Below the pieces are notes generated by a model that ran no database searches, was not told the DNA's origin, and saw nothing but the letters and a program-made list of their open reading frames with translations. Position numbers and translations under genes: made by a program. From Monocercomonoides exilis PA203 (Eukaryota > Protista > Preaxostyla), in NCBI GenBank assembly GCA_001643675.2, contig LSRY02000008.1, positions 1,178,001 to 1,242,000 on the forward strand: a DNA stretch of 64,000 bases, written 5' to 3'. Below, piece by piece: positions 14,898 through 61,790 of the stretch. Position 1 is the stretch's first letter; every line of letters starts with the position of its first letter.

Positions 14898-16574
14898 TTG
14901 AGGTATTTTGTGAAATTTCACCAAGAGGCAAGGGAAAGAGAAGGAGGCGAAGATGGAAGTGTTTCGACATGCGAATCTCTTATCTCATCTTCAACAGCAT
15001 TTCTTTCATCACCTTCTATACCCCTAATATCCCTCTCCAAATTATCATTTTTCAACATCTCAACAGCAAATGATGCATGCTCACCTTCAACCTCTACGTC
15101 AACACAAACCACTTGTTTGATGAATAGTTGCTCATTTTCATCGGTTTGCAATGCATATGATGGCGGGATTGTTCATTCCCTCAACAACCCCTTGGTTTCT
15201 CTGACTGTCTCAAACACCTCGTTTGTGGGATGTTGTCGGACAAGGAATGTTGAATATATTGGAACTTCAGGAAATAAGAAACAACCAGGAAGACAGAATA
15301 TAACAGAGAATGGAACGAATACATTCACTTGGTGCGAATGGGATGGGTCGAAAACAGCGGGAAAAGGCGATTCATGGGATGATGGTATATCGAGCGGGGG
15401 AGCGATATGCATGTTCAATTTAGGAGAAGGAGTATTGTCTATTTTGTTTTGCAAGTTCAACAACTGCTATTCCGACGCATATGGGGGAGGTGTATTTTGC
15501 CATGCGATCAAGACAATTGTGTGTGAGAACAGCACATTCAGCAGCTGCACAGCACAAGCAAATACAGGTGGCGGAATTCATGCTTATTCGATTTCATCAT
15601 GTGTTCAGATCAGCGGATGTGAATTTCAAAAATGTTCTGCAAATGGCTGGGGAGGAGGTTTGAGACTGGATGATTTTCAGGTTTCAGAAACAGGATGCAT
15701 TCCAACAGAAAGCGGAGAAGGGGAGAGTGCGTGTGTGTTTGACTGCAGTTTCACTTCATGCTCAGTCACAAATTCATATGGTGGAGGCATGTATTGCACT
15801 AACATTCCAGCTGCATTCAAGATCAAGAATATTAGATTTCTTTTTTGCTCTGCTGTTTCATATGGCGGAGGGTTGCGATTATATACAGATAAAACAACAA
15901 TGCCAATTGATTTGCATTATTGTTATTTTCTTTTTTTCCACGAATGCAAATGCTCAGCCAATCCTCCACGCGGACATGATATTGCATATGCAGATTATTA
16001 CAACTTCTTCTTGAACTCAGGAAATCCATTCTTTGAATGTTACACCACAAATACGGATGAAAAGAGAATTTGCTATGCATTCAACTATTCGAATGCAAAC
16101 ACCTGGTATTTTCAGCACACAGAAAAGTGGGATTGGCTGAAGGATAAGACGATATACGTTTCAGTGAAAGGGAATGATTCATCTCCACTTTGTGGTGCAA
16201 ATGAAACATTTCCTTGTCTGGCAGTGAAGAAGGCGCTTGAGATGTGTGAAATACAGATTAGTTTGACAATCACACTGCTGGAAGGGAATCACAAAAGCGA
16301 GACAGCAACAATTGATATTGGATCAAAGAAGATTTCGGTCATTGGGAAAGGGAGGACGGAGAGTTTGATCGGAACAGGAGCACTTTTATCAACAAGAGAG
16401 CTATTCAGCGTGTCAACAGGTCATCTTGGAATGAGCCACTTGAAGGTTGACTGCAACTCAAATTCAAGTCCTTCTTCACAGAGTGTGGTTGTTGTATCTG
16501 ATGGGAATGGGTCACTCTCGTCGGAGGAAGTTATTATGTATTTATTATCATTTTTTATTTTTTTTCATGTTTGA
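14898..16574 (+). CDS. Beta-helix family copy 5 (mosaic)
   Basis: 558-codon ORF. N-terminus is identical to copy 8, the middle is near-identical to copy 10, and the C-terminal ~80 aa are identical to copy 2. Confidence 0.7.
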   Translation: MRYFVKFHQEAREREGGEDGSVSTCESLISSSTAFLSSPSIPLISLSKLSFFNISTANDACSPSTSTSTQTTCLMNSCSFSSVCNAYDGGIVHSLNNPLVSLTVSNTSFVGCCRTRNVEYIGTSGNKKQPGRQNITENGTNTFTWCEWDGSKTAGKGDSWDDGISSGGAICMFNLGEGVLSILFCKFNNCYSDAYGGGVFCHAIKTIVCENSTFSSCTAQANTGGGIHAYSISSCVQISGCEFQKCSANGWGGGLRLDDFQVSETGCIPTESGEGESACVFDCSFTSCSVTNSYGGGMYCTNIPAAFKIKNIRFLFCSAVSYGGGLRLYTDKTTMPIDLHYCYFLFFHECKCSANPPRGHDIAYADYYNFFLNSGNPFFECYTTNTDEKRICYAFNYSNANTWYFQHTEKWDWLKDKTIYVSVKGNDSSPLCGANETFPCLAVKKALEMCEIQISLTITLLEGNHKSETATIDIGSKKISVIGKGRTESLIGTGALLSTRELFSVSTGHLGMSHLKVDCNSNSSPSSQSVVVVSDGNGSLSSEEVIMYLLSFFIFFHV

Positions 16575-19110
16575 TAATGAAAATAAAGCAAAAAATAAAT
16601 GTGGTGGTTTTTATTAGTCAGGACATTTTTTTAGTAAGCATAGGAAAACAAAAACAAGTTAAAAATGAACAAAACAAATTGTGACAAGTTTTAATATATT
16701 TATTTGAATTCGTATTTAAAAAATAATATGCTCTGATTTTATTTTTGTTTTGTTTCGAATAAAGATCTCGAGAGTTTGTGTTTGTTTAATTTTCAAATTA
16801 TTTATTTATTCATTTTTTTTTTTCATATTTCCCCTTTCCGCTTGTCTTTAACAATTTGTCTCAGTAATGCAAGAAATCGTCTGTTATTGTTATTATTTAA
16901 AACATCATTTTTTATTCAATTTGTTTGAACGAAAAGTGTGAAAAGTTCCAATTTCTGATTTATTATTTTCTAAAAAAGAAAAAAAAAAAAAGACTGAATG
17001 AATGTTAAATATTGACATTAAAGAAGTTCACTAATTTTATCAAAATTCAATGCAAAAAGAAGTTTTGTGAAAAAATCAATAAATATTTCATTTTGCAAAA
17101 GCACGAATATTTTTCGATTTTAATCATGTGGACTTTCTTGAAAGTCACATTGTTCTTATCATCTCATCTGTTCAGTTATTAACAGGTGCCCCCTTTTCTT
17201 TTATCCAAACATAAATGTTTTTCAAACCAAACATCATTCTTTTACAAAAATAAAAATTGTATTTAGAAATCCAAGTTATATTTTTTTGAATTATTGTGTC
17301 TGAGATTATTTCATTTTTTTTATTATGATTTTTATTTTTGATCAAAGACTTGTTCGTGGGATAAGAGCACTTGAGTGTTGAAGGTTATGATATGGGTGAT
17401 TGTTTTTGAAATCATAACTTTCATACAGGGGTGTGGCCATTGACATTTCATCCTTTGACATGAACATTGCCACTGAAACCAAGTTGATCGAAACATAGAA
17501 TTTCCGACTTTGGTGAACAATCAAAAGCCAAAAAATGACAATCAACTTCATGTGGATTTCTGCTCACCTTTGTTATCAAACAAACTCGAACAATCAAAAT
17601 CAATTTTCACTGAGACTTCCTGAATGAAAAACAATAATTTTGAAAAGGATAAAACATCCAAAGAAGTTCAAATTTTGTTTCAATGATCAAAAATTTTGAA
17701 GAGAACTCACAAATTATTGATTATGTTTTTTATTCTATTGATTTTTTTTTTTCAATAACAATAGAGCATTCAAAAAAAAATTTTCTTCATCGTTCATCAC
17801 TCGTATTTTTGAAGCATGTTGAATTAATATTTATTATATGGTTTAATTTATTTCTGTTGAAATCATAAAATAATTTGAAATCAAAAAATTATTTCATCAA
17901 TAATTTGTGAGTTCTCTTCAAAATTTTTGATCATTGAAACAAAATTTGAACTTCTTTGGATGTTTTATCCTTTTCAAAATTATTGTTTTTCATTCAGGAA
18001 GTCTCAGTGAAAATTGATTTTGATTGTTCGAGTTTGTTTGATAACAAAGGTGAGCAGAAATCCACATGAAGTTGATTGTCATTTTTTGGCTTTTGATTGT
18101 TCACCAAAGTCGGAAATTCTATGTTTCGATCAACTTGGTTTCAGTGGCAATGTTCATGTCAAAGGATGAAATGTCAATGGCCACACCCCTGTATGAAAGT
18201 TATGATTTCAAAAACAATCACCCATATCATAACCTTCAACACTCAAGTGCTCTTATCCCACGAACAAGTCTTTGATCAAAAATAAAAATCATAATAAAAA
18301 AAATGAAATAATCTCAGACACAATAATTCTAAAATATAACTCAGATTTCAAAACACAATTTTTGTTTTTGAAAAAGAATGATGTTTGGTTTGAAAAACAT
18401 TTATGTTTGGATAAATGAAAAGAGGGCACCTGTTAATAACTGACCAGATGAAATGATAAGAACAATGTGACTTCCAAGAAAGTCCACATGATTAAAATCG
18501 AAAAATATTCATGCTTTTGCAAAATGAAACATTTATTGATTTTTTCACAAAACTTCTTTTTGCATTGAATTTTGATAAAATTAGTGAACTTCTTTAATGT
18601 CAATATTTAACATTCATTCAGTCTTTTTTTTTTTTCTTTTTTAGAAAATAATAAATCAGAAATTGGAACTTTTCACACTTTTCGTTCAAACAAATTGAAT
18701 AAAAAATGATGTTTTAAATAATAACAATAACAGACGATTTCTTGCATTACTGAGACAAATTGTTAAAGACAAGCGGAAAGGGGAAATATGAAAAAAAAAA
18801 ATGAATAAATAAATAATTTGAAAATTAAACAAACACAAACTCTCGAGATCTTTATTCGAAACAAAACAAAATTAAAATCAGAAAGAATTTTAAAAGAATG
18901 AACTCAAAAAATATATTAAAACTTGTCACAATTTGTTTTGTTCATTTTTGACCCGTATTTGTTTTCCTATGATTATTTAAAAAAATGTCCTGACTAATAA
19001 AAGCCACCACATTTATTTTTTGCTTTATTTTCATTATCAAACATGAAAAAAAAAATGATAATAAACACATAATAACTTCCTCCGACGAGAGTGACCCATT
19101 CCCATCAGAC
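16500..19110. repeat. Palindrome P2: second copy of the P1 core, arms ~16500-17721 and 17896-~19110, same 174-bp spacer
   Basis: Spacer 17722-17895 matches 5136-5309 in the same orientation; mirrored ORFs 17342..17551 / 18066..18275. Confidence 0.93.
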
Positions 19111-20912
19111 ACCACAACCACACTCGGCGAAGAAGGATTTGCATTTGAGTTGCAATCAACTTTCATGTGCAATAAACCAAGTTGGCCTGCTGTCACACTG
19201 AACAGCGTTCCTACAGATGAAAGTGCTCCTGTTCCAATCGCGCTCTTCTCTTTGCACGTCCCAATGACCGAAATCTTCTTCTCTCCAATATCAACTGTTG
19301 TTGTCTCGCTTGTGTGATTCCCTTCCATCAGTGTGACTGACAGACTCACTTGAATCACGCTCTTTTCAACTGCAACACCAATGGTTCTGCATGCACTTGA
19401 CTCATCCAATCCACACAACTCTTCTTCACCACCACCACTCACAGCTACAAATCGATTGAGAATCCCTCTCTTCAGCCAATCCTTCTTTTCTGTGTGATAG
19501 TACGACCAACTACTTCCCGTATAATCATATCCATAACACACTCTCTTGTCATCTGTATTTGTTGTGTAGCATTCATAGAAAGGATTGTTTGAAGACTTAA
19601 AAACATTATATAGATCAAAATACATCACATCATGCCCATATGGAGTGGCTGCAGAGCATTTGCATTCATGGAAAAATATGAAGAAACAATAAATTTTATC
19701 ATTTGGTGCTGTTGCTCGATTTGGATGCAAACACAATCCTCCCCCAGTTGACGTTGCTGAACATGAAATAAACTGAACACTCCTCATTTTGAATTGTGTG
19801 ATTGGAATGTTAGCACAACACATACCCCCACCTCCATTGTTTGTTATCGAGCATGAAGTGAAACTGCAGTCAAACACACACGCACTTTTCCCTCCTCCAT
19901 TTTCTGTCTCAATGCATCCTGACCCTGAAACCTGAAAATTATCAAGATTAAGCCCTCCTCCATAGCCAATTGCTTTACAATTTTGAAATTCACATCCGCT
20001 GATCCGAACACATGTTGAAATCGTTACAACGTATAACCCTCCTCCAACATTATTTTGAACCGAGCACGAATTAAACAAATTATTTTCGATATACACAGAT
20101 TTGATTGTATGACACATGATTCCGCCTCCACGACTGAATGCAAAGCAATTATTAAACCGACAATGTGAAACAGAAAGTTCTCCAGAATTGAGATTATACA
20201 TGCAGATGGCCCCTCCGCTTGATACTCCATCAGTCCACGAGTCACTTTCTCCTGTTGTCCTCGATCCGTTCCATTCACACCAAGTGAATGTGTTTGCTCC
20301 ATTGAATGTTTCATTCTGTCTGTCTGGTTTCAATGGAATCTCTGTTGTTCCTTCACATTTAACATTTCTTGTCCGATAACATCCCACAAACGAGGTGTTT
20401 GAGGCAGTTAAAGAAGCCAAGGGATTGTTGAGGGAAGGGACAATCCCGCCATCATATGCATTGCAAACCGATGAAAATGAGCAACTATTCATCAAACTTG
20501 ATGCGTGGAATGAGGAAGTGGTTGAAGGTGAGCATTCATCATTTGCTGTTGAAATGTTGAAAAATATCAGATGCGAGAAGGATATAAAAGGGATGGAAGG
20601 TGAAGAAAGGAATGGGGCAGAAGATGAGATGAGAGATTTGCATATTGAAACGCTTCCTTCTCTTTTAATTTTTTTATCATGCACCTGTTTTGCATCTCCG
20701 CGCCATGTAACAGAATATTTCCAAAAGTCAGATCCTTTCACTATCTCTTCTGCTGCCTCTGAAAACCATGTTGTTAAAAATGGAAAAGCATCTTTTTTCT
20801 TCAACTCCGCTGAACGGAAACAACATTCCAACATTCTTCCTCCTCTATTTCTTTGATAATCTCTTTTTCTCCCATTTCCATCTTCTGCCTTCTTTCCATA
20901 TTCCATTCGCAT
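18942..20912 (-). CDS. Beta-helix family copy 6 (mosaic)
   Basis: 656-codon ORF with ATG start and family motifs; shares blocks with copies 2, 8 and 11. Confidence 0.7.
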   Translation of the reverse strand: MRMEYGKKAEDGNGRKRDYQRNRGGRMLECCFRSAELKKKDAFPFLTTWFSEAAEEIVKGSDFWKYSVTWRGDAKQVHDKKIKREGSVSICKSLISSSAPFLSSPSIPFISFSHLIFFNISTANDECSPSTTSSFHASSLMNSCSFSSVCNAYDGGIVPSLNNPLASLTASNTSFVGCYRTRNVKCEGTTEIPLKPDRQNETFNGANTFTWCEWNGSRTTGESDSWTDGVSSGGAICMYNLNSGELSVSHCRFNNCFAFSRGGGIMCHTIKSVYIENNLFNSCSVQNNVGGGLYVVTISTCVRISGCEFQNCKAIGYGGGLNLDNFQVSGSGCIETENGGGKSACVFDCSFTSCSITNNGGGGMCCANIPITQFKMRSVQFISCSATSTGGGLCLHPNRATAPNDKIYCFFIFFHECKCSAATPYGHDVMYFDLYNVFKSSNNPFYECYTTNTDDKRVCYGYDYTGSSWSYYHTEKKDWLKRGILNRFVAVSGGGEEELCGLDESSACRTIGVAVEKSVIQVSLSVTLMEGNHTSETTTVDIGEKKISVIGTCKEKSAIGTGALSSVGTLFSVTAGQLGLLHMKVDCNSNANPSSPSVVVVSDGNGSLSSEEVIMCLLSFFFSCLIMKIKQKINVVAFISQDIFLNNHRKTNTGQK

Positions 20913-21187: not shown

Positions 21188-22801
21188 TCAGCTGCCAATG
21201 TCACAGACAATAGCATTGCTTCTCTTCTGCTCCAAAAATTGCTGCTTAATTCCAATCTCAGCTTCGCTTGCACTCCAACAACTCATACAAAAAATTCTTA
21301 AAAAAAATTGACGAGTATGATGAAGAAAGCGAAGAAGACGAAGAAGACGAAAATTGTTGAATAAAGGGAAAACAGCTTCTGTTCCAATCGAACTCTCCGT
21401 CCTCCCTTTCCCAATGACAGAAATCTCCTTTGTCCCAATCTCAATCGTTGTTGCCTCGCTCGTGTGATTCCCTTCCATCAGCGTGACTGATGAGCTCAGC
21501 TCTTCCAAGCCCGTCTCCACTGCGTGTCCCACCGTCTGGCATGGAGCCGACTCGCCCATTCCACACAGCCCACTCGAGTCGCTTCCATTTACCCCCACAA
21601 ACAGAACCTTTGTCCAACCCTTCAGCCACTTCTTCTTTTCTGTGTGCTGATATGACCAGCTGCTCCCAGTATAATCATATGCATAACACATTCTCTTCTC
21701 ATCTGTATTCGTTGTGTAACATTCTTTGAACGGACAATCTGAGTTCAAATAGAGGCTGTAATAATCTTCATAGTACAGGTCAGCTCCATACGACGGATCA
21801 GAATCACTCGAGCAACTGCAGTTGTGAAAGAGAAGGAAAAAGCAATACAGTTTGTCACTTGGCAACACATCTCGCCACGGAGCAAAACACAATCCCCCTC
21901 CCTTGATCAATGCAGAGCACGAAAAAAACCGAATGCTCCTCATTTTAAATTTTGTCTCAGGCACATTTTTGCAAAACATGCCTCCACCAAGTGAATTTGT
22001 TATGGAACATGAAGTGAAACTGCAGTCAAACACACACGCACTTTCCCCTCCTCCTTTTTCTTCTCCAATGCATCCTGACCCTGAAACCTGAAAATTTTCG
22101 AGAAAAAGTCCTCCTCCTTGAATACTTGCTTTGCAATTCTGGAATTCACATCCGCTGATCCGAACACATGTTGAAATCGAATATACATACAACCCTCCTC
22201 CATAGAAATTTTGAGCTGTGCATGTATTGAATATATTGTCTTCAGCAATAAATGTTTTGATTTGCCGGCATATTACTCCCCCACCTCCATAATGCGCATA
22301 ACAGTTGTTGAACGTGCAATGCCGAATAGAAATTGAGGCAGATGCCAAATTGTTCATGTTGATTGCTCCGCCATTCGAAGTACGATCAGTATGATCGTCA
22401 ACTTCTCCTGTTGTTTTCGATCCATTCCACTCACACCAAGTGAACGTATTCGCTATATTTTCTGTAATGCTTTGTCTCTCTGGGTGTTTCTTATTGTCTT
22501 CGGTTCCGGTACATTCAACATTTCTTGTCCGACAGCATCCAAAAAACGATGTATTTGAGGCTGTTAAGGAAGCCAAGGGGTTGTTCAGAGAAGGAACAAT
22601 CCCGCCATCATATGCATCGCAAACTGATGAGAATGAACAGCTGCTCATCAAACATGAGGTTTGAGTTGACGTAGCGGATTGAGGTGAACATGCATCATTT
22701 GCTGTTGAGATGTTGAAAAATGATAATTTGGAGAGGGATACAAGGGAAATAGAAGGTGAAGCGAAATATTGGCAAAAAGATGAGAAATTAAATTCATTCA
22801 C
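21188..22801 (-). CDS. Beta-helix family copy 7
   Basis: 537-codon ORF. N-terminal block is identical to copy 4; the C-terminal LFVGVNG..SSG.CGMGESAPC.TVGHAVETGLEELSSSV block is shared with copy 9. Confidence 0.7.
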   Translation of the reverse strand: MNEFNFSSFCQYFASPSISLVSLSKLSFFNISTANDACSPQSATSTQTSCLMSSCSFSSVCDAYDGGIVPSLNNPLASLTASNTSFFGCCRTRNVECTGTEDNKKHPERQSITENIANTFTWCEWNGSKTTGEVDDHTDRTSNGGAINMNNLASASISIRHCTFNNCYAHYGGGGVICRQIKTFIAEDNIFNTCTAQNFYGGGLYVYSISTCVRISGCEFQNCKASIQGGGLFLENFQVSGSGCIGEEKGGGESACVFDCSFTSCSITNSLGGGMFCKNVPETKFKMRSIRFFSCSALIKGGGLCFAPWRDVLPSDKLYCFFLLFHNCSCSSDSDPSYGADLYYEDYYSLYLNSDCPFKECYTTNTDEKRMCYAYDYTGSSWSYQHTEKKKWLKGWTKVLFVGVNGSDSSGLCGMGESAPCQTVGHAVETGLEELSSSVTLMEGNHTSEATTIEIGTKEISVIGKGRTESSIGTEAVFPLFNNFRLLRLLRFLHHTRQFFLRIFCMSCWSASEAEIGIKQQFLEQKRSNAIVCDIGS

Positions 22802-25800
22802 AGAAGTTCTTCCTTTTCCTTCTCTTCCCCACGCATCTTGGCAAAGCGTCGCAAAATATCATTATGTGGCTGTATCCCTTTTTCTGCCTCTTCTGCTGCT
22901 GCTTCCGAAAAGATTTTTGTTAAAAAAAAATCCCACAAAAATTTCTTCCCCATTCTCTTCAGTTTTTTCCGCCTGGCTCATTCTGCCAAACACTCTTCTG
23001 GATGCTGAATTCTCCCAATTTCTTCCAGGAATGTTCATGAAAAAAAAGCAGTGTTTCCATATCCCATGTTTCATGCTCCCCCAGCGTTTCTCATAACACC
23101 TGATCGCATCACACATCAATCAAATTAAAATATGCAAAAGTATATAAAATAAAAAATGGAACATGAAGAAAATGAACAAACAAGAATAAAATACCTCCAC
23201 AAATCTTCATTTCTCTTCGCTCCCCTCGTCCCCTGTTTGCCTCTCTCCAAATAACTCTCACCCCAACATCATCCACTCCAAGCACCACACCACACCACGC
23301 CTTCGCCTTTCATGTCCAATTCCAAATAAAGAAAAAATAATATGTTGTTTTCACACTCTCTTCCATTGCCCATTCAACCTCACTTTCACCATTCTTCTCT
23401 TCCCTTCTTCCTCCATCCAGCCCTCAACCAAAAAAAAATATAGAATATCTCTTCTTCCCATCTTCTGCTCATTCTTCAAGCAAGGATTAAAAGAATAAAC
23501 AGTCTGCGCTCCATCGACATCCCTCAGGCAACATATGATGGCTTTCCGCGCATCTTTCGGCAATTCACTCAATATTCTGAATAAAAATATGTATCAAATA
23601 AAAAATATCATGAAATTTTTATTTAAGAAAATATACAAATTTGTAAAAAAAAAATGTGAAAGATATTTTTAAAAAACAAAACAAAACAAATAATAACAAA
23701 CTATTTTATAATGAATTTTCTTCACACACTTTTTCTAATTCGTCCTTTCTTCTTCATTTCCTTTTTTTTCCCCAAAATATCGTTCCTTTCTGTCAGCAAA
23801 ATTCATTTATCCCGGCTACGTTTCTTTTCCACTTCTCCTAAATATTAACAAAAGCTCAATCCTCTGTTCTGCTTCCTCTCGAATTACCTCCACAAACTCC
23901 ATTCCATAAAAATGCAAGCAATGAAGAAGATTCCATCTGAAGAATCCTTTCCCATCTCTTTCCCAAATCTTCTTCTTCTTCTCTCCATTTCCCCTCAAAA
24001 CAACAGCAATACTATCCCACTAAATATCACAATCCCTGTCCCCCCAGCTCCCATTCCCCTTCTTCCAACCAAAAAAATATAAATATCTCCATCCTTTTTC
24101 TGTCTCTTTCCATTGCAAAACACCTCCCATAATCAGCTCCTCATCTTCCTCTGCCTCCACACCTCCAATGCAAAGCGCCAGCGCTGATGTTCCTTCTTCC
24201 TGTCTTCCTCCGCACCCACCTCCATCACTTGCCCTGCAATCGCCTGGCGCGGCCAAACGGTCCTTTCAATAAAAAATAAAAAAAGATAAAAAAAATATCT
24301 CTTTCTTTTTTTTCTTCAACCCCACTTCTCTTTCTTATCAAACATACATCAGCAAAAATTCTCCCTCTTGCTCCGCCTCATATGAGCCCTCTTCTCTCTC
24401 CCTGCATTTGAAAAAAATCACATCTCCTCCCCATTTCTTCTCCATCTCAAATCCTCACCTCCAAAAAATATATTCCATTCACTCCACCCATCTTTTCCCC
24501 CTCTATTCCCTCCTCGCCCCACCTTCAACACAACAAATTCCATTTTTCAAATAATAAACGCAACTTCCACACCTTCCAACTCACAAAAATCGAAAAAATA
24601 ACCCCTCCCAAACTCCATCCCTATCCATCTCCCACGCATCCATTTTGCCTCTTAAACCTCCCAAAAACACCTCTTTTCCACAAAAAACATTCTTTTATCG
24701 CTCCTTTCCCTCTCAAAACCTTGTCTCCTCCAAAAACTCAACCCCATCACTCCACACCATAAATCCATCCTTTTACAATCGCATTGTCTTCATATGCCCG
24801 TTCAGCCACGGCACATCGAGTAGGACTTTCTTTTCTTTTGTGGCTCTAATTCGTTATGGAACATGATCAAGAAATGCCAAATGCTCAGAAACTGCCAACG
24901 GGGTCAGATTCAGAAGCTAAAACAAAGACAGGTTGACTAAGTGAAATATTTTTAGTGAAAGGGTTGGGTATTACAAAGAATATCCGCTTGATGGAAGATG
25001 AAATTGTTCATATTTATTGATGGAATGCTGTGGAGCAACAATATTTTCGATGGAAATGAAGAATTTTCAATGTATGTATTTTATATTGTTCTATATGTTG
25101 TGAAGATATTTCCATCCGTAACCTCTCCAAAGTCGTGATTCAGACGATTTATAAAAAATGGACAATTTATTCCATGCAGAGCAAGACAGAGAGGAAGGGA
25201 GCCAAATGTTATCTTACAAATATATTACTAGAGCCTAGATGTGTTTTGTTACGAATGTTTATGCTTCTTATTATGGACTCAACATGCACTGGATAGAAAT
25301 TTGATGAAAAATGAATTTTAATGGAGCAGAAATCAACGGGGTTGGAAGATATCCAAGGCTAAAAGGAAGAATGATCAATACATATGAATAGAAAGTGTTT
25401 TTTTTAAAGGAGGAAGAGGACATTTTCAAAAAAAAATTTTGTTGGAAAGATTGGAGCAAATGACTGAAACAGGAGATTGAAGGCGCTGGAGCAGGACAGG
25501 GAGCATTTCTTGGAATAAGAAGGGCAAGACATTGCTTTTATGGACCGGGGGGAGGGATGGAACTGCTTTTCTTTGCTTGGCTTTTGAACCAAATATACGA
25601 GAAATACAGACAGTTTGGCGTGATACAGGCAGCTGGAGGCAAATGATAGGCAAAATGGATTTGAGTCATTTGACCTTTGTCTTCAGCCTTCTATCGTTGA
25701 AGGGTTATCCATTGAAGCAGAGAGCGAGGCAGTGATGCTGAAGATATCTTCTGACAGAAGATACATAGTATTCAAACTTGACAATAACATCGCATTCACC

Positions 25801-45446: not shown

Positions 45447-48195
45447 TTTGATGGAACATCAACGATTTATTTTTTCTTTGAAAAAAAAGAGTATTTATGT
45501 TAATTCATAAATTTCGATGTTTTGCAGAAACAAAAAGTGGACAAGTTTCTTTGTTGAATCCTTCTTTTTTTTTTTCAATGAAAAAATTCATATGATTTTT
45601 ATTTTTTCATTCATTAGCCAACTGCTTTTGAATGATTTTTTAGACTACAATAGTTATTAAAAATATATATCGATCTTTTCTTTTTCATTCTTTTTTTTTC
45701 AAATGTGATTTTCACAACAACATTTTTTTATAACAAAATGAAAAAATCAAATAGTTCCCTTGTTTGAAAGGATATATGAAATTTCGGAACAAACTGTTGA
45801 AGAACTTCAAAAATGATATGTTGATGAACAAACAAACAAATGGATAAATGAATGGATGAAAAACATCAAACAAGAGTATTTTCACAGCAACTGATGAATG
45901 AAAAAGGAAAACGATAACTTTTTTTTGTATTTTTGTCAAGTAATATCAAACTCTTCTGATTTGTCAATCATTCATTTTCATTTTGACAGGGGAAAATAAA
46001 AATGAAAACAATTATTCATTGAGAAATCAGATGAATTAGAAAATGGGCTTTATCATGATTCAAATGAGAAACATTTATCAAAATGAAAAATATGAATCAA
46101 AAAATGATCAAATCTTTTTTATTAGAAATGATTATTTTTCATTGACGTTTAACTCTATATCCTTTTTTATATCAACCACAAGGCACTCAATGGCTTTCAA
46201 AATCATGATTTCAAAATTAATCACCCATATTAATTCTTTTGAATTGAATGTTTCTTTTTAGTTTGTTTAGCTGTCTATTATTTCAGAACTAATATATCTT
46301 TCCCAAAACTTTGATGAGACGATAATTATACAATCACTTTATGTTCATTTCTCTTTTATGATTTTTGAAATCACATTTTAACTTCAAAATAAGTTTTAAT
46401 GCACCAATTTATCAAACATATTTGGAACAATGAAAAATTACCAACAAATTGTGATTTGCATTTCTGTCAAATTTGACAAATCGATTGTCCTCATTCAAGG
46501 AAAATCCCAAATGTCATTGAATATGGAGATTTTTTACATGTGCGATTTTTCAAAAAAAGTGAAACATTTTTATTTGATATTTTTATTCTATTTTAATAAT
46601 TTAAGAGATGCTCAAATTAATTATTCTAACTTTTTATTGCGTGAAATTAAATATAAATATATATATAGTTAGTGTTAATAATGGTGGATACTTTCAATAA
46701 CTGTGGACAGTTGCATTATCTCAACAATCGTTGACAGTTGCTTTTTGACAATTAACCCAATTATTCCCTCATTGAATATGAACTTATATATCTTTCAAAA
46801 ATGAATCTTTCTTAATTCCTGGGAGCAAGTTGTAACATTACAGTACGTCTCATAAGTTCATATTCAATGAGGGAATAATTGTGTTAATTGTCAAAAAGCA
46901 ACTGTCAACGATTGTTGAGATAATGCAACTGTCCACAGTTATTGAAAGTATCCACCATTATTAACACTAACTATATATATATTTATATTTAATTTCACGC
47001 AATAAAAAGTTAGAATAATTAATTTGAGCATCTCTTAAATTATTAAAATAGAATAAAAATATCAAATAAAAATGTTTCACTTTTTTTGAAAAATCGCACA
47101 TGTAAAAAATCTCCATATTCAATGACATTTGGGATTTTCCTTGAATGAGGACAATCGATTTGTCAAATTTGACAGAAATGCAAATCACAATTTGTTGGTA
47201 ATTTTTCATTGTTCCAAATATGTTTGATAAATTGGTGCATTAAAACTTATTTTGAAGTTAAAATGTGATTTCAAAAATCATAAAAGAGAAATGAACATAA
47301 AGTGATTGTATAATTATCGTCTCATCAAAGTTTTGGGAAAGATATATTAGTTCTGAAATAATAGACAGCTAAACAAACTAAAAAGAAACATTCAATTCAA
47401 AAGAATTAATATGGGTGATTAATTTTGAAATCATGATTTTGAAAGCCATTGAGTGCCTTGTGGTTGATATAAAAAAGGATATAGAGTTAAACGTCAATGA
47501 AAAATAATCATTTCTAATAAAAAAAGATTTGATCATTTTTTGATTCATATTTTTCATTTTGATAAATGTTTCTCATTTGAATCATGATAAAGCCCATTTT
47601 CTAATTCATCTGATTTCTCAATGAATAATTGTTTTCATTTTTATTTTCCCCTGTCAAAATGAAAATGAATGATTGACAAATCAGAAGAGTTTGATATTAC
47701 TTGACAAAAATACAAAAAAAAGTTATCGTTTTCCTTTTTCATTCATCAGTTGCTGTGAAAATACTCTTGTTTGATGTTTTTCATCCATTCATTTATCCAT
47801 TTGTTTGTTTGTTCATCAACATATCATTTTTGAAGTTCTTCAACAGTTTGTTCCGAAATTTCATATATCCTTTCAAACAAGGGAACTATTTGATTTTTTC
47901 ATTTTGTTATAAAAAAATGTTGTTGTGAAAATCACATTTGAAAAAAAAAAAGAATGAAAAAGAAAAGATCGATATATATTTTTAATAACTATTGTAGTCT
48001 AAAAAATCATTCAAAAGCAGTTGGCTAATGAATGAAAAAATAAAAATCATATGAATTTTTTCATTGAAAAAAAAAAAGAAGGATTCAACAAAGAAACTTG
48101 TCCACTTTTTGTTTCTGCAAAACATCGAAATTTATGAATTAACATAAATACTCTTTTTTTTCAAAGAAAAAATAAATCGTTGATGTTCCATCAAA

Positions 48196-50385
48196 TTACT
48201 CACCTTTCTTCCTTTCCTTTTCACAAATAAACCCGATTTTCTTCTCCTCGATAAAACAGGAGATTTCGAGTTTTGCAGCAGTGATGGTGCTTATTTTATG
48301 TGGGTTGCACGGGTTGCAGCAAAACAGAAACAAATTCGCAACGCACCTATGATTTTTTATTCCTCCCTCCAATTTCACATGCGACCAAAAATTCATCTCA
48401 GAATCGCCCTTCCCAAATATACAACCACTCTGCTCCCCTTCTGTTCTCGTGCTCATCATCCCGAACGTCTCTCCTGCCTTCACACTCTTTGCCACAACCA
48501 CCCCATCTCCTTCAGTCAACTTCACATTCGTCACCTTCACATTCGCCAGCACGCTATCTCCTGATGCTGTGGCTGTCAGATACAGTGCAGTTGACGACAA
48601 TGACAACAATGAAGAAGAAGAAGAAGGAGAAGAGAGATCCGGCTCAGAGAACAATGATTTTGAGACATTCATATTTATGATCTCCACATCAACCATCGAC
48701 AGCTGCGACAGCGGCACCACAAACACTGACGACGACATCACATAGTCTCCTGTTTTACTCGTGGTGATCACAACATCCTCCAACGAGAGTGACCCACCTC
48801 CATCAGACACCGCAACTACACTCGGCGAAGAAGGATTTGCATTTGAGTTGCAATCAACCTTCATGTGCAATAAACCAAGTTGGCCTGTTGTCACACTGAA
48901 CAGCGCTCCAGTTGATGAAAGGGCTCCTGTTCCAATCGAACTCTTATCTTTGCCTTTCCCAATAACTGAAATCTTCTTTTCTCCAATATCAACTGTTGTT
49001 GCCTCGCTTGTGTGATTCCCGTCCAGCAGCGTGATTGTCAAGCTAATCTGCACCTCGCACATCTCAAACGCCTTCTTCACCGTCAGACACGGATTTGATT
49101 CATTTGACCCGCACAGCACATGTTCATCATTCCCGCTCTCTGACACGTATACTGTCTTGTCCTTCAACCAATCCTTTTTTTCTGTGTGATAGTACGACCA
49201 ACTACTTCCCGTATAATCATATCCATAACACACTCTCTTGTCATCTGTATTTGTTGTGTAGCATTCATAGAAAGGATTGTTTGAAGACTTAAAAACATTA
49301 TATCGATCATAATATACCATATCATGACCATATGGAGTGGCTGCAGAGCATTTGCATTCGTGAAAGAACAGGAAATAACAATAAATCACATCATTTTGTG
49401 ATGCTTGTCTGTATGGATATAACTCCAATCCTCCGCCTTCTCTTAATGCTGAACATGAAATAAACCGAATGCTCCTCATTTTGAATTGTGTGATTGGAAT
49501 GTTAGCACAACACATACCCCCACCTCCATTGTTTGTTATCGAGCATGAAGTGAAACTGCAGTCAAACACACACGCACTTTTCCCTCCTCCATTTTCTGTC
49601 TCAATGCATTCTTGCCCCGAAACATTAAAATTATCAAGATAAAGTCCTCCTCCAGCATTATTTGCTTTACAATTCTGGAATTCACATCCACTGGTCCGAG
49701 CACACGTCGAAATCAAATAAACGAATACCCCTCCTCCATATCGATTTTGCGCATTACATGAATTGAACGTGTTATTCACAATCTCAACCGATTTAATATT
49801 ATAGCAACTAATACCTCCACCGCACCAATGCGCGACACATTCATTGAATGCACAATGCGAAACTGAAACAGCGGCCAACGATTGACCACACATGAATATC
49901 GCACCACCGTTCGAAGTGCCATCGGAATATACCTCGCCTTTTCCTGTTGTTCTCGATCCATTCCATTCACACCAAGTGAATGAATTAGCTCCATTGAATG
50001 TTTCATTCTGTCTGTCTGGTTTCAATGGTACCTCTGCAGTTCCTTCGCAAACAACATTCCTTGTCCGACAACATCTGACAAACGATGTGTTTGAGGCAGT
50101 CAAGAAAGCCAAGTGGTTATTAAGGGAGGGAACAATTCCGCCATCATATGCATCATTAACAGACAAGAATGAGCAACTATTCATAAAACTTGATGTTTGG
50201 GTTGACGTAATTGTTGGAGATGGGCAATCTGAAGATGCTGTTGAAATATTGAAAAATGTCAAATGAAAGAGGGATATAAAGGGAATGGAAGGTGAAAAGA
50301 AGAATGGGGAAGAAGATGAGAAACGCGATTCATTCACTGAAATTCTTTCTTCAACGCAACCTTCTCTTCTCAACGCCTTTAGCAT
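48196..50385 (-). CDS. Beta-helix family copy 12 (mirror of copy 11)
   Basis: Translation identical to 43257..45446. Confidence 0.72.
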   Translation of the reverse strand: MLKALRREGCVEERISVNESRFSSSSPFFFSPSIPFISLFHLTFFNISTASSDCPSPTITSTQTSSFMNSCSFLSVNDAYDGGIVPSLNNHLAFLTASNTSFVRCCRTRNVVCEGTAEVPLKPDRQNETFNGANSFTWCEWNGSRTTGKGEVYSDGTSNGGAIFMCGQSLAAVSVSHCAFNECVAHWCGGGISCYNIKSVEIVNNTFNSCNAQNRYGGGVFVYLISTCARTSGCEFQNCKANNAGGGLYLDNFNVSGQECIETENGGGKSACVFDCSFTSCSITNNGGGGMCCANIPITQFKMRSIRFISCSALREGGGLELYPYRQASQNDVIYCYFLFFHECKCSAATPYGHDMVYYDRYNVFKSSNNPFYECYTTNTDDKRVCYGYDYTGSSWSYYHTEKKDWLKDKTVYVSESGNDEHVLCGSNESNPCLTVKKAFEMCEVQISLTITLLDGNHTSEATTVDIGEKKISVIGKGKDKSSIGTGALSSTGALFSVTTGQLGLLHMKVDCNSNANPSSPSVVAVSDGGGSLSLEDVVITTSKTGDYVMSSSVFVVPLSQLSMVDVEIINMNVSKSLFSEPDLSSPSSSSSLLSLSSTALYLTATASGDSVLANVKVTNVKLTEGDGVVVAKSVKAGETFGMMSTRTEGEQSGCIFGKGDSEMNFWSHVKLEGGIKNHRCVANLFLFCCNPCNPHKISTITAAKLEISCFIEEKKIGFICEKERKKGE

Positions 50386-53300
50386 AACGCTGCAAAATAT
50401 CTCAATATGATTGTATCATTTTTTCTGCTTCTTCTTCCCCTTCTGATCATCATGGCTTCCACACATCTCTTTTTTTCCTTCTGTTTCCGTTTTCTTCCTT
50501 CTTTCCATATTCCATTCGCATTCATCGCTTTTGAATATTCATGCAAAAGTCCCTATTATCAATTAAAAATATAAAGAAAAAATATAAAAAATACATAAAA
50601 TTGATATTAAAAATATCACAAACCAGTACCTTTTTCTTTTTGCAATCTTCTTCCTTTTCTTCATCTTCATTTCCATCTTGACTTCCTGTCACATTTCTTC
50701 TTCAGCCATTTCCTCAATTTTCCGATTACTCTTTTCCGTCGCTTCCCCTTCTTCTTTTTCAAATCGCCGCACAAATCTTCAAAGGTCTCCTCTTCCATTC
50801 ATTTCATTGATTTCCTCCAGCTCATTCTTCGATATTCTCAAATTTTTGTTATTGCCTGATTTCTCAAAAGCATCCAATATGCTCTTTCCCCCATGTTCAT
50901 TCATTGCCTGAAAATGTCCTTCCATAAATCTTAATCCCTCAAAAAAATAAAAAAAATAAATATGTGAAAAATTTGAGAAAAAAAAATAATACAAAACACA
51001 CTCTAAAAATATATTTATCGCCAATCTTCACACACTTTCTTCTTCTTCTTCGAGTGCCTCTCAAAATATTGTTCTTTTCTGCCAACAAAACTCGCCTTTT
51101 CTGTCTCCGCTGCCAATCTCAACATCAATGAAAGTGATTCTGTTCTGCTTCCAAAAACTTGCTTATTTCCAATTCTCGGCACTGATTCCGCTCGAATAAC
51201 ACACAAACAATAAAAATCCTTCAATAAAATTTTTAATGAAGATGAGGATGATGATGACAGCGATGATGGCAATGACAGAGATGAAGATGATGAAGATGGT
51301 GAACGCGATGTTATTGTCAAGTTTGAATACTATGTATCTTCTGTCAGAAGATATTCTCAGCATCGCAACCTCGTTCTCTGCTCTTGTGAATAACGTTTCA
51401 ATGATAGAAGGCTGAAGACAAAGGTCAAATGACTCAAAGTCCATTTTGCCTGTAATCCACTCCAAGCTTCTTGTATAACGCCAAACTTTCTGATTTTCTC
51501 GTATATTTGGTTCAAAAGCCAAGTAATCAAATCCAGTTCCATCGCTCCCCCCAGCGCGTAAAAGCAATGTCTTGCCATTCCCACCCCAAGAAATGCGCCT
51601 TGTTCTGTCCCAACCAATTTCAATCTCCTGTTTCAGTTATTTGCCCCAATCTCCCCAACAAAAATTTTCTGAAAATATCCCACCCTCATTAAAAAACGCT
51701 CACTTTTCATTGAATTTTGTTATTCTTCCTTTTAGCTTTGAATGTCTTCCAACCCCGTTCATTTCTGCTCCATTAAAATTCATTTTTCATCGCATTTCTA
51801 TCCATCGCGCATGTTGAGTCCAAAATAAGTCACATAAATATTTGTAACAAAATACATTCAGGCTCTAATATATTTGTAAGGTATCATTTGGCTCCCTTCC
51901 TCGCTGTTCTGCTCTGCAAAGAATAGATTGTCCATTTTTTATAAGTTGTCTGAATCACGACTTTGGAGAGGATACGGATGATAACATCTTCACAATCAAT
52001 AGAGCAATAAAAATTGCATACATCGAAAATTCTTCTTTTCCATCGAAAATATTGTTGCTTCACAGCCATTCATCAATCAAAATGAATAATTTCATCTTCC
52101 ATCGAATAAATATTCTTTTGTAATACCCCACATTTTCACTGGAAATATTTCACTTAGTCAACCTGTGCTTGTTTTAGCTTCGGAATCTCACTCCGTTGGC
52201 AGTTTCTGAGCATTTGGCATTTCTTGATCATGTTCCATAACGAATTAGAGCCACAAAAGAAAAGGGGCACAACTCGATGTGTCGTGGCTGAATGGGCATA
52301 TGAAGACAATGCGATTGTAAAAGAATGGATTTATGGTGTGGGGCGATGGAGTTGAGTACTTGAAGGAGGCAGGGTTTAGAGAGGGAATGGAACGATAAAA
52401 GAATGTTTTTTTGGGGGGAGAAAGAGGTGGTTTTGGTGATATTTCAGATGCAAAACGGATGTGCGGGAGATGGATTTGGATGGGATTTTGAGGGGTTGTT
52501 TTTTCGATTTTTGTGAGTTGGAAGGAGTGGAGGTCGTGTTAATTATTTGAGAAAAGGAATTTGATGTGGAGGAGGTGGGATAAGAGGGGAAAACAAGAAG
52601 GGCGGAAGATGAGTGGCGTTAATGAAATATATTTATTGGAGGGGAAGAGAGAGATGGAGAAGAAATGGAAAAGGGATTATTTTTTTTTATGTATCGAGAG
52701 AAGGAGAAGGCATATGGGGCAGGGCAAGAGGGAGAGTATTTGCGAGTGAGTGTTTGATAAGAAGGAAAAGTGGGGTTGAAGAAGAAAAAAAAAAGAAAGA
52801 ATATTTTTTTATCATTTTTTATTTTTTATTGAAAGGACCGTTTGGACGCTCCTCTCATTTGCGGGGCAAGTGTTGGAGGCGGAGGCAGAGGAAGACGGGA
52901 AGAAGGAACATCAGCGCTGGTGCTTTGCATTGGAGGTGTGGAGGCAGAGGAAGATGAAGGGCTGACAATGAGAGGGTGTCTTGCAATGGAAAGAGACAGA
53001 AAAAGGATGGAGGTATTTATTTTTTGATTAGAGAAGGATGATGGGAAAAGGTGTTACAAGGAGTGAAAAAGAAAGGAATTTTGCAATTGTTTATGGAAGA
53101 GATGGAGGATATGTGGTGGAGGGGCGTTGTTGTTGTTTTGGAGGAAACGGAGAGAAGAAGAAGGCGATACAGCGGAAAGGGATGGGAAGGGATTCTTCAG
53201 ATGGAATCTTCTTCATTGTAAGTTTTTTATGGAATGGAGTTTGCGGAGTTGTTCCTCTGAAAGCAGGGCAAGGATTGGAAATAAATTATTTTTTGGAGCA

Positions 53301-53425
53301 GAAAGGAAGCGAAGACGGGGCTGACGGGCTTTGTTGCTGAAAAGAACGATATTTTAAGAAAAAAAGGAAATGAAGAAGAAAGGATGAATTAGAAAAAGTG
53401 TGTGAAGAAAATTCATTATGAAACA

Positions 53426-53551
53426 GTTTGTTATTATTTGTTTTGTTTATTTTAAAAAAAAAATATCTTTCACATTTTTTTTTACAAATTTGTATATTTT
53501 CTTAAATAAAAATTTCATGATATTTTTTATTTGATACATATTTTTATTCAG
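53426..53551 (+). other. Candidate intron (GTTTGT...TTCAG) in the 5' module; homologues on the - strand at ~11355-11477 and ~23577-23700
   Basis: AT-rich 126 nt with GT-AG ends, between more GC-rich exon-like blocks. Confidence 0.45.
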
Positions 53552-54031: not shown

Positions 54032-55732
54032 GTGTTGCCAGAAGCGCTGGGGGAGCATGAAACATGGGACATGGAAACACTACTTTTTTTTTGGGCATTC
54101 CTGGAAGAAATTGGGAGAAAACAGCAGCAGAAGATATTTGGCAGAATGAGCCAGGCAGAAAAAATGGAGCGAACGGGAAAAGGAATTTTTGTGGGATTTT
54201 TTATTTACAAAAATCTTTTCGGAAGCAGCAGCAGAAGAGGCAGAAAAGAGGAACTCAAGCTCAATGGGATATTTTTTGACATGGCACAAAGGATCATGTG
54301 GCAAATAAGTGAAGGGAAAGGAAGAACTTCTGTGAATGAATTTCATTTCTCTTCTTTTTGCCAATTTTTCTCATCACCTTCTATTCCCCTTATATCCCTC
54401 TCCAAATTATCATTTTTCAACATCTCAACAGCAACTTCGACATGCTCGCCTTCAACCACAATGTCAACCCAAACCTCTTGTTTTATGAACAGCTGCTCAT
54501 TTTCTTCTGTTTGCGATGCATATGATGGCGGGATTATTCATTCCCTCAACAACCCCTTGGCTTCCTTGACAGCCTCAAATACATCATTCATCGGGTGTTG
54601 CAGAACAAGAAATGTTGAATATATTGGAACTTCAGGTAATAAGAAACACCCAGAGAGACAAAATGAAACATTCAATGGAACGAATACATTCACTTGGTGC
54701 GAATGGGATGGGTCGAAAACAGCGGGAAAAGGCGATTCATGGGATGATGGTATATCGAGCGGGGGAGCGATATGCATGTTCAATTTAGGAGAAGGAGTAT
54801 TGTCTATTTTGTTTTGCAAGTTCAACAACTGCTATTCCGACGCATATGGGGGAGGTGTATTTTGCCATGCAATCAAGACAATTGTGTGTGAGAACAGCAC
54901 ATTCAGCAGCTGCACAGCACAAGCAAATACAGGTGGCGGAATTCATGCTTATATAATTTCAACGTGTGCTCGGATCAGCGGATGTGAATTCCAGAATTGT
55001 AAAGCAAATAATGGTGGAGGAGGTTTGAGATTAGAAAATTTTCAGGTTTCAGGAACAGGATGCATTGGAACAGAAAGTGGAGGAGGGGAGAGCGCGTGTG
55101 TGTTTGACTGCAGTTTCACTTCGTGTTCAGTGACAAATTCATATGGTGGAGGCATGTATTGCACTAACATTCCAGCTGCATTCAAGATCAAGAATATTAG
55201 ATTTCTTTTTTGCTCTGCTGTTTCATATGGCGGAGGGTTGCGATTATATACAGATAAAACAACAATGCCAATTGATTTGCATTATTGTTATTTTCTTTTT
55301 TTCCACGAATGCAAATGCTCAGCCAATCCTCCACGCGGACATGATATTGCATATGCAGATTATTACAAACATTTTTTGGATTCTGGAAATCCGTTTTTCG
55401 AGTGCTATGCTACAAATGCTGATGATAGGAGATTATTTTATGAATACTATGATGGTACTAATTGGATCCACAAGCACACAGAAAAGTGGGATTGGCTGAA
55501 GGACAAAACGATATATGTTTCTGTTGGTGGAGATGATAATATTGAGTTGTGTGGGATGAATGAAACATATCCGTGTCTGACGGTGAAGAAGGCATTCGAG
55601 ATGTGTAAGATACAAATTAGCTTGGCAATCACGCTGATGGAAGGGAATCACACAAGCGAGACAACAACGATTGAGATTGGGACAAAGAAGATTTCAGTTA
55701 TTGGAATGGGCAAAGAGAAGAAGAAAATCTGA
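54032..55732 (+). CDS. Beta-helix family copy 13
   Basis: 566-codon ORF. Matches copy 10 from LNNPLAS onward except an internal ~60-codon replaced segment; the N-terminus differs. Confidence 0.7.
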   Translation: MLPEALGEHETWDMETLLFFWAFLEEIGRKQQQKIFGRMSQAEKMERTGKGIFVGFFIYKNLFGSSSRRGRKEELKLNGIFFDMAQRIMWQISEGKGRTSVNEFHFSSFCQFFSSPSIPLISLSKLSFFNISTATSTCSPSTTMSTQTSCFMNSCSFSSVCDAYDGGIIHSLNNPLASLTASNTSFIGCCRTRNVEYIGTSGNKKHPERQNETFNGTNTFTWCEWDGSKTAGKGDSWDDGISSGGAICMFNLGEGVLSILFCKFNNCYSDAYGGGVFCHAIKTIVCENSTFSSCTAQANTGGGIHAYIISTCARISGCEFQNCKANNGGGGLRLENFQVSGTGCIGTESGGGESACVFDCSFTSCSVTNSYGGGMYCTNIPAAFKIKNIRFLFCSAVSYGGGLRLYTDKTTMPIDLHYCYFLFFHECKCSANPPRGHDIAYADYYKHFLDSGNPFFECYATNADDRRLFYEYYDGTNWIHKHTEKWDWLKDKTIYVSVGGDDNIELCGMNETYPCLTVKKAFEMCKIQISLAITLMEGNHTSETTTIEIGTKKISVIGMGKEKKKI

Positions 55733-56515: not shown

Positions 56516-58357
56516 TTGAGGAGCATTTGCAGAAGAGTGGGAAAAAGGGAAGGGGATGAAAAGTTTGTTGTGGGGATGGGGAGGGAAGATGAGGCAGAGG
56601 CATTTGATGTGAGTGGGAGCATTGGGGTGTTGACAAATATCACATTGAAGGGGTGGGGAAGAGGGGGAGAGATCTATTCAGGCAGGCTGTTTGGAGGGAA
56701 GGGATATGGAGGGGAGAAGGGTGGAGGTGAAGAAAAAGGAGGAGAAGGAGGAGAAATGGGAAGAGGAAGAGAAGGAGAAGGCATTGAAGGGAGTATTTCG
56801 GTGAGCGAATCACACTTCTCTTCTTTTTGCGTCTCATCAGCCCCATTCCTCTCATCCCCTTCAATACCCCTTGTATCCCTCTCCAAATTATCATTTTTCA
56901 ACATTTCAACAGCAACTTCGACATGCTCGCCTTCAACCACAATGTCAACCCAAACCTCTTGTTTTATGAACAGCTGCTCATTTTCTTCTGTTTGTGATGC
57001 ATATGATGGCGGGATTGTTCATTCCCTCAACAATCCCTATGCCTCTCTGACTGCCTCAAACACCTCATTTGTTGGGTGTTGCAGGACAAGAAATGTTGTA
57101 TGTGAAGGAAATGCAGATGGAAAGTTGACTCCAGGGAGACAAAATACAACGGATAATGGAGCAAACTCATTCACTTGGTGTGAATGGAGCGGATCGAAGA
57201 CGACAGGAGAAAGTGACTCTTATACTGATGGAATATCAAGTGGAGGGGCCATCTGCATGTACAATCTCAATTATGGAGAACTTTCTGTTTCGAATTGTCT
57301 GTTTAATAACTGTTTTGCATTCAGTCGCGGAGGTGGGATTATGTGCAATACAATAAAGTCTGTTCATATAGAAAATAATGTGTTCAATGCCTGTACAGCA
57401 CAAAATCAATATGGAGGAGGGTTATACGTTGTAATGATTTCAACATGTGTTCGGATCAGCGGATGTGAATTCCAGGATTGCAAAGCAAGAGAACGTGGAG
57501 GAGGACTTCTTCTTGAAAATTTTCAGGTTTCAGAAACAGGATGCATTCCAACAGAAAATGAGGGAGGGGAGAGTGCGTGTGTGTTTGACTGCTGCTTCAC
57601 TTCATGCTCATTGACAAGCAATGGAGGTGGAGGCATGCGTTGTGTGACTGTTCCAAGTCAGTTCAAAATGAGGAGCATTCAATTTATTTCATGTACAGCA
57701 AATGGATATGGTGGAGGGTTGGAATTGTATCCAAATCGAGCAACAGCGCCAAATGATAAATTTTATTGTTATTTTTTGTTCTTCCATGAATGCAAATGCA
57801 GAACAACCTCCAATCCATATGGGCATGATGTGATGTATTATGATTATTATAATGCCATTTCGACTTCAGATAATCCATTTCATGAATGTTACACAACAAA
57901 CACAGATGACAAGAGAGTATGTTATGGATATAATTACTCGAATGCAGGTGCCTGGACATTTCAGTACACCGAAAAGAAGGAATGGTTGAAAGATAAGACG
58001 ATTTATGTTTCTGTGAATGGAAATGATAATTTTGAGTTGTGCGGGGCAAATGAATCAAATCCGTGTCTGACAGTGAAGAAGGCGTTTGAGATGTGTAAGA
58101 TACAGATAAGCTTGTCAGTCACGCTGATGGAAGGGAATCACACAAGCGAGATAGCAACGATTGAGATTGGGACAAAGAAGATTTCGGTTATTAGGATGGG
58201 CAAAGAGAAGAACCAAATTGGGTTGGAGGTGGATTTGTATTGTTCATCCTTTCTTCATATTTCTTTTCACTTCTTTTTTATTTTTTATAAATTCAAGCTG
58301 AATAACAGAATTTTATTGTTGGAAACACAGAAAATTATTTTAAATGGGTATTTTTGA
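56516..58357 (+). CDS. Beta-helix family copy 14 (mosaic)
   Basis: 613-codon ORF. N-terminus is identical to copy 9; internal blocks are shared with copies 1/4, 2, 6 and 8. Confidence 0.7.
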   Translation: MRSICRRVGKREGDEKFVVGMGREDEAEAFDVSGSIGVLTNITLKGWGRGGEIYSGRLFGGKGYGGEKGGGEEKGGEGGEMGRGREGEGIEGSISVSESHFSSFCVSSAPFLSSPSIPLVSLSKLSFFNISTATSTCSPSTTMSTQTSCFMNSCSFSSVCDAYDGGIVHSLNNPYASLTASNTSFVGCCRTRNVVCEGNADGKLTPGRQNTTDNGANSFTWCEWSGSKTTGESDSYTDGISSGGAICMYNLNYGELSVSNCLFNNCFAFSRGGGIMCNTIKSVHIENNVFNACTAQNQYGGGLYVVMISTCVRISGCEFQDCKARERGGGLLLENFQVSETGCIPTENEGGESACVFDCCFTSCSLTSNGGGGMRCVTVPSQFKMRSIQFISCTANGYGGGLELYPNRATAPNDKFYCYFLFFHECKCRTTSNPYGHDVMYYDYYNAISTSDNPFHECYTTNTDDKRVCYGYNYSNAGAWTFQYTEKKEWLKDKTIYVSVNGNDNFELCGANESNPCLTVKKAFEMCKIQISLSVTLMEGNHTSEIATIEIGTKKISVIRMGKEKNQIGLEVDLYCSSFLHISFHFFFIFYKFKLNNRILLLETQKIILNGYF

Positions 58358-61758: not shown

Positions 61759-61790
<32 letters not shown>

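Follow-up and report, generated by a model that had tools for sequence, protein, structure and literature searches.

Fourteen truncated receptor heads in a palindromic array

The window examined here, which is 64,000 nucleotides (nt) in length, corresponds to positions 1178001-1242000 of contig C80 in the nanopore assembly of Monocercomonoides exilis, whose genome comprises 82.3 Mb in 101 contigs (PMC8767320). It carries 14 copies of a cysteine- and glycine-rich sequence, placed in both orientations and separated by kilobase-sized spacers. NCBI annotates these copies as genes, and a first-pass annotation of the window likewise treated them as such. Instead, they are truncated head fragments of receptors that are approximately 3000 amino acids (aa) long. 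The fragments are mosaics, real patchworks that swap segments among themselves as well as with complete members of the receptor family.

Protein matches that carry names are MONOS genes, and EukProt proteins with GiardiaDB-style names are taken to represent the earlier 454 assembly (PMC8767320). Copy 1 (1-1253, + strand), truncated by the start of the window, is the mirror twin of copy 4 (9178-10594, - strand), which covers receptor aa ~266-722. Copy 2 (2131-3982, +; aa ~169-793) is identical over 533 aa to the 454-based protein P0007 and differs by one substitution from its mirror twin, copy 3 (6466-8317, -). These are followed by copies 5 (14928-16562, +; aa ~233-793), 6 (19068-20702, -; aa ~232-778), 7 (21371-22906, -; aa ~227-727), and 8 (26781-28232, +; aa ~233-724). 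Over their annotated lengths, copies 7 and 8 are identical to P0095 and P0021, respectively, in both the 454-based and the Oxford Nanopore Technologies (ONT) proteomes. Copies 9 (35556-37366, -; aa ~169-727/756) and 14 (56563-58222, +; aa ~169-723) are mirror partners that have since diverged, as are copies 10 (38200-39611, -; aa ~279-722) and 13 (54318-55729, +). The longest fragment, copy 11 (43276-45179, +; aa ~245-876), has an identical mirror twin in copy 12 (48463-50366, -), and its 3' cut point is common to many array copies.

The window is part of a palindromic array and includes two large palindromes, centered at ~5,223 (P1) and ~46,820 (P2), whose arms pass through the copies and beyond. 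The P1 core (4396-6049) has arms of ~726 bp and a loop of ~200 bp, and the arms extend outward to at least positions 1 and 10431. The central loop of P2 spans 46788-46851, with arm similarity reaching out to ~36.9 kb and ~57.0 kb, where it ends within copies 9 and 14. A 2.6-kb duplicate (98.8%) of the copy 2 tail plus the P1 core is now located at 16288-18882, between copies 5 and 6. The P1 core itself recurs there at 16,980-18,635, and twice more on contig C53. Inverted copy pairs of like kind extend on C80 to ~1.85 Mb and are also present on C53 and C71. Fragment-like copies are found beyond these three main arrays at C34:960596-961278 and C45:512071-513441, the first of which matches across the copy 11 3' cut point. 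In addition, many contigs carry a ~37-bp piece of the P1 core (4799-4846 and 5610-5646), in some cases as two inverted copies separated by 0.2-1.6 kb; it may be one end of a small mobile element.

The parent receptors and the fold of the head

The head domain opens reading frames (ORFs) of ~3000 aa on many contigs, and at least 100 annotated proteins of ~1000-3100 aa include it. As read from their sequences, the complete genes encode a signal peptide, a long ectodomain, one membrane segment, and a degenerate kinase C-lobe. The tail of a complete gene matches PF07714 (E 4e-12 at aa 2879-2978) over model positions 157-257 only, and the HRD and DFG motifs are not at their expected places in the four tails read. 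The complete genes are thus predicted to be receptor pseudokinases of the tyrosine-kinase-like type. An expansion of the M. exilis kinases to 332 predicted members, with a tyrosine-kinase-like family, has been described (PMC6759080), and this family overlaps the unclassified repeats of the genome (PMC8767320). The complete genes noted here, which match PF07714 at the C-terminus, are part of that expansion. Complete receptors (L011-L030) also display body and tail swaps between subfamilies, wherein, for instance, the pairs C1a/C62 and C19a/C19c shift from ~50% to ~90% identity part-way.

The window copies begin at receptor aa 169-279 and end at aa 722-876. They carry no signal peptide, body, membrane segment, or tail, and almost nothing of the 200 aa of body that come next is present in the array. 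There are at least four cut points at the 5' side and at least five at the 3' side, some of them common to many copies, and the same hypervariable region is kept by all fragments. The starts and ends of the ORFs are heterogeneous and extend into unrelated flank, and approximately 26 framework cysteines are conserved.

All copy cores are open except that of copy 1, which has a one-base frameshift near 822 in a run of T nucleotides. This frameshift is absent from twin copy 4 and is read through in the corresponding 454-based protein (P0122), and is probably a nanopore assembly error. Stop codons gather in the fragment ends and are rare in the cores, where neutral mutation to 5% would leave the ORF open in just 4% of cases. 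The ratio of nonsynonymous to synonymous substitution (dN/dS) in the framework is 0.09 for fragments and 0.06 for complete genes.

A structural model of the common core is a right-handed beta-helix (pectin-lyase-like), with a predicted local distance difference test (pLDDT) score of mostly 80-97 over residues 80-350. Structural matches to this model have Z scores of 14-19, the best being 5mqp (Z 19.2, root-mean-square deviation 3.5, 244 residues aligned). Foldseek returned no significant hit for the head, and Pfam nothing significant for the fragments. The modeled fold and the position of the head suggest that it could serve as the binding tip of the receptor. Relatives outside M. exilis appear to be only distant, as eight of ten representatives looked up are from M. 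exilis and one is from Streblomastix (35% over a short part).

Mosaic structure of the copies

Non-twin copies are 67-79% identical overall, yet they have tracts of 80-700 bp in common with 0-1 mismatches. Copy 5 was viewed initially as a combination of copies 8, 10, and 2. A tract that begins in the non-coding flank matches copy 8 (14757-15172 = 26610-27025, +; 416 bp, 0 mismatches), the middle matches copy 10 (15309-16003 versus 39255-38561, +; 695 bp, 1 mismatch), and the tail and flank match copy 2 (16324-16977 = 3744-4397, 0 mismatches). All three parts were therefore recovered, but two stretches (15173-15308 and 16004-16323) have no near-identical partner within the window.

A similar outcome was obtained for copy 9, proposed to combine copies 14, 10/13, 11, and a copy-7-type tail. 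Its 5' end is as in copy 14 on the mirror arm, 381 bp are shared with copy 13 (1 mismatch), and two exact tracts of 80 and 224 bp are shared with copy 11, the longer one at 36338-36561 (-; = 44083-43860). The tail is of the copy 7 type, but it is only 88% identical to copy 7. Copy 8 was said to take segments from copies 6 and 14, and copy 14 from copy 4. The corresponding tracts exist (241 bp exact for copies 8/6; a 178-bp tract with 4 mismatches and a second one of 84 bp for copies 8/14; 82 bp exact for copies 14/4), but direction cannot be read from them. The blocks assigned to copies 6 and 11 are confirmed as exact tracts of 138 and ~130 bp. Other tracts link copy 4 with copies 7 and 13, and copy 6 with copy 2. 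Copy 13 differs from its mirror, copy 10, at the 5' end and by one replaced internal block of 180 bp (54953-55132, +), for which the 40 top-scoring genome matches include no exact donor (identity 90-91% at best).

Runs of identity are longer than chance (p<0.01) in 32 of 55 copy pairs in a codon-permutation test. Moreover, the shared blocks are far less diverged at silent sites than the remaining sequence. When protein identity alone is used to define the blocks, the difference at four-fold sites is 29 of 756 (3.8%) inside them versus 614 of 1746 (35%) outside, which rules out convergence or selection on point mutations as the origin of these blocks. Trees built from four segments conflict with strong support, such that copy 9 groups with copy 13 in segment 1, with copy 11 in segment 2, and with copy 7 in segment 4. 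Exact tracts, silent sites, segment trees, and an independent assembly all support the modular mosaicism by recombination described in the first-pass annotation.

The chimeras are also very unlikely to be artefacts of consensus building. In addition to the 454-based matches of copies 2, 7, and 8 given above, contigs made from three DNA runs cover 30 of 30 bins of the region 35,400-41,200 (copies 9-10) and show few deviating letters within the coding copies. One DNA contig (36,238-36,367) joins DNA found only in copy 9 to the copy 11 tract at its edge, 36,338 (30 nt), and an RNA-run contig (36,232-36,427) makes the same join (90 nt). Assembly chimeras are thus ruled out for copies 2, 7, 8, and 9 by 454-based proteins and read contigs. 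The two checks named in the first-pass annotation as possible refutations, on silent sites and on consensus artefacts, both left the mosaicism standing.

Breakpoints within the heads

Switch points were originally proposed to fall in conserved motifs. However, a shared tract runs on to the next mismatch, and therefore its end will seem to lie beside conserved sequence even if the break is random. We compared the tract ends with simulated uniform breakpoints subjected to matched ascertainment. For the 28 ends in the window set, conservation inside tract ends is 0.742 versus an expected 0.734 +/- 0.014 (p=0.28), which rules out fixed crossover motifs. Likewise, 97 tract ends from a set of 28 sequences occupy 43 of 45 bins of 30 nt. 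For these 97 ends a uniform model is marginal (p=0.05), a requirement for 6 nt of identity fits, and one for perfect homology of at least 10 nt can be rejected; later point mutations also make ends and would dilute a stronger breakpoint signal. At resolved two-donor junctions the shared identity has a median of 22 nt, compared with 6 nt at random sites, and the value of 22 is inflated by three-way sharing.

Thus, what remains of the original proposal is a weak need for local identity of ~6 nt, whereas the motif clustering is mostly an ascertainment effect and fixed hot spots do not fit. The junctions favor a degree of local identity, as any homologous exchange would, and they are not confined to a few crossover motifs. 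The analysis found no dedicated switching site. Site-specific shuffling of the shufflon kind, which uses fixed recombination sites, differs from the situation here in both the spread of the ends and the simulation result. The reading frame is preserved at the switches, as had been noted, but this follows from in-register exchange and no special mechanism is needed.

Exchange with complete receptor genes

Tracts also link the fragments to complete genes. Copy 8 and a complete receptor on contig C7 have 165 nt in common with 1 mismatch, and copy 14 and a receptor on C14 have 119 nt in common. Copy 14 (57560-57920) also matches a receptor gene at C53:516.3-516.6 kb (356 nt at 96%) and a cassette at C80:1270 kb (98%).

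The heads of complete genes are scrambled relative to the bodies. Close receptor paralogues have bodies that are mostly 80-100% identical and heads that are at most 76% identical. For seven close receptor pairs, four-fold divergence is 0.32-0.50 in the head versus 0.07-0.15 in the body. In a set of 16 complete genes, the protein identity of heads does not exceed 76% in any pair, compared with up to 94% for bodies, and the similarity of heads shows no correlation with that of bodies. Positive selection on point mutations would not increase silent divergence, which is high in heads, and therefore the heads are being replaced. The exchange scrambles exactly the region that is common to all fragments, and it looks many-to-many.

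Interpretation and alternatives

We favor a model, to which we assign a probability of roughly 0.58, in which the copies are head fragments, the receptor family as a whole undergoes segmental gene conversion, and the fragments provide an extra reservoir of head variants. Head fragments were amplified by inverted duplication into palindromic arrays. Heads exchange in-register segments of tens to hundreds of bases between fragments, between genes, and between fragments and genes. Ordinary homology-directed repair might accomplish this, perhaps requiring only a few bases of perfect identity within a broader similarity of 70-80%. Gene conversion would predominate, with occasional crossovers that exchange flanks, as in copy 5, where the 5' flank is that of copy 8 and the 3' flank that of copy 2. 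The reservoir presumably would serve many receptors on an evolutionary time scale, and selection might favor new ligand-binding surfaces for bacterial prey glycans, for host molecules, or for antibody escape.

Several observations weigh against this model. The 16 complete genes were picked by similarity to one window copy, and the direction of transfer is unreadable from tract data. Furthermore, the longest peptide that a complete gene shares has a median of 25 aa with another complete gene and 25 aa with a fragment, and therefore fragments are not privileged donors. The open cores could result from overwriting by functional genes rather than from selection on fragments. Alternatively, the arrays could be a passive by-product, meaning selfish or accidental palindromic debris (foldback or Pack-type) that is kept open by overwriting, adds little to receptor diversity, and recombines since the head is the only sequence common to all units. 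The lack of donor privilege fits this reading, as does the number of tracts per pair, which is 0.41 between fragments versus 0.07 between fragments and complete genes (approximately five-fold). That several tracts extend into non-coding flanks, that rearrangement ends lie inside heads, and that a few cut points are common to many copies are also in accord with debris. However, the same hypervariable region has been kept despite the variety of cut points on both sides, and stops accumulate in fragment ends rather than in cores. We regard a by-product origin as unlikely, but worthy of serious consideration.

Programmed antigenic variation, in which a single expression site or a small number of them would receive one-way copies of silent cassettes, seems improbable. 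An archive of incomplete copies confined to the variable region and in-frame segmental mosaics, as in systems of the vls, VSG, and msp2 type, are both present. The candidates for expression sites are three array-flanking receptors with near-equal body scores and different heads, located at C80:~1149500-1158500 (-), which is ~20 kb before the window, C53:~459000-462000 (+), and C53:~514800-517800 (-); in the assembly the ORFs of the two C53 genes are only 1581 and 1252 aa. Apart from itself, the copy 14 head matches one of the three best (91% over 801 nt), and among complete genes the copy 11 tail is most similar to the C80 gene. However, of 40 matches to the 5' arm of copy 14, the C80 gene ranks last (78%), and thus the case for a vlsE-like site is mixed and that for the trio as an expression site is weak. 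No single expression site was found, and heads are scrambled in all receptor pairs tested. No one-way flow was found either, given that fragments change among themselves, as copy 13 has relative to its mirror, copy 10, and are not privileged donors. A comparison of 454 and ONT consensus data from hostless culture revealed no head substitutions in ten receptors (the flanking trio not among them) and four fragments. It is doubtful as well that diversification is regulated, with palindromic head-only arrays rewriting the ligand-binding tips of a few flanking receptors, or of any expressed one, within the host. Were this true, the signalling receptors of a harmless, mitochondrion-free gut protist would be subject to an immune-like or antigenic-variation device. 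The prospect that fragments are short, free beta-helix proteins with functions of their own, kept open by selection, is very slim. The gene annotation by NCBI, the low framework dN/dS, and RNA-run contigs, which are present in 23 of 30 bins and extend over head DNA specific to copy 9, would fit this idea. However, the fragments have no signal peptide despite their conserved cysteines, their ORFs end in unrelated flank, and the RNA run reaches into spacers as well and may contain DNA, which its contigs do not distinguish from RNA. Finally, assembly with ONT reads and Canu followed by Pilon polishing (PMC8767320), the large perfect palindromes, and the homopolymer frameshift in copy 1 could raise the concern of chimeric consensus across repeats, but the independent proteins and read contigs described above render this explanation barely credible.

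Relationship to known systems

The Trypanosoma brucei variant surface glycoprotein (VSG) genes are likewise a protist surface family with an archive of incomplete copies and segmental, in-register mosaics (PMC13233330, PMC3708902). Break-induced VSG mosaics have perfect identity of mean ~9 and median 6 bp (PMC13233330), similar to the best fit of ~6 nt here. In contrast to the VSG case, no monoallelic expression site was found here, the targets are many signalling-type receptors with a membrane segment and a pseudokinase tail, and the fragments are themselves heavy mosaics in internal palindromic arrays. The vls cassettes of Borrelia correspond to the variable part of the complete vlsE gene, with alternating variable and framework blocks, conversions that are random in position and length, and inverted repeats (PMC11499132), all of which resemble the present array. 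However, vls transfer is one-way, into a single expression site, from a contiguous array in one orientation whose cassettes are ~90% identical, whereas here identity is 67-79%, spacers are kilobases long, orientations are mixed, and exchange appears many-to-many. The functional pseudogenes of Anaplasma msp2/p44 are similarly clustered, truncated copies with a hypervariable region between conserved arms (PMC2789410), but they are bacterial, serve a single expression locus, and undergo demonstrated immune-driven switching.

Partial-donor archives have been described chiefly in pathogens with a single variable coat protein, whereas the same architecture occurs here in a commensal and for a whole family of receptor pseudokinases. 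The Entamoeba transmembrane kinases are another large, cysteine-rich receptor kinase family of a gut protist, with a fold different from that of the M. exilis head, and we know of no donor arrays for them. In chickens, truncated immunoglobulin pseudo-V donors diversify a binding domain of a different fold, in a process that is somatic, AID-driven, and directed at a single target. The array offers a testable case for how such a pseudogene archive might arise before, or without, a programmed switch, and its mosaics illustrate that no special crossover motifs are needed. Some of the unclassified repeats and hypothetical genes in M. exilis also find an explanation in this architecture. A term search of two papers on M. 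exilis (PMC6759080, PMC8767320) found no mention of a beta-helix ectodomain, head-only arrays, or gene conversion, and within our incomplete coverage of the literature we found no published description of head-only arrays or mosaics.

Other features of the window

A search of the window with Rfam yielded nothing significant. ARAGORN predicts a tRNA-Ala at 43809-43894 and 49748-49833, within the coding parts of copies 11 and 12, and these predictions are almost surely false. Spacers between divergent copies contain an ORF of ~160 aa (13237-13731, 42008-42481, and 51163-51636) with approximately 90 relatives in the genome, many of them within arrays and on C42. Most relatives carry stops, and the ORF is probably not a gene.

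Two neighboring short ORFs (31024-31857) occupy the 7-kb gap between copies 8 and 9. They are unlike receptor heads and have no Pfam match, as is also true for Pfam with a long, serine-rich, low-complexity ORF (61443-63998, -) in an apparent gap in the array. Lastly, a 270-bp segment (59576-59844) is 71-79% identical to DNA located 3' of complete receptors on C8 and C14, and constitutes a dispersed repeat.

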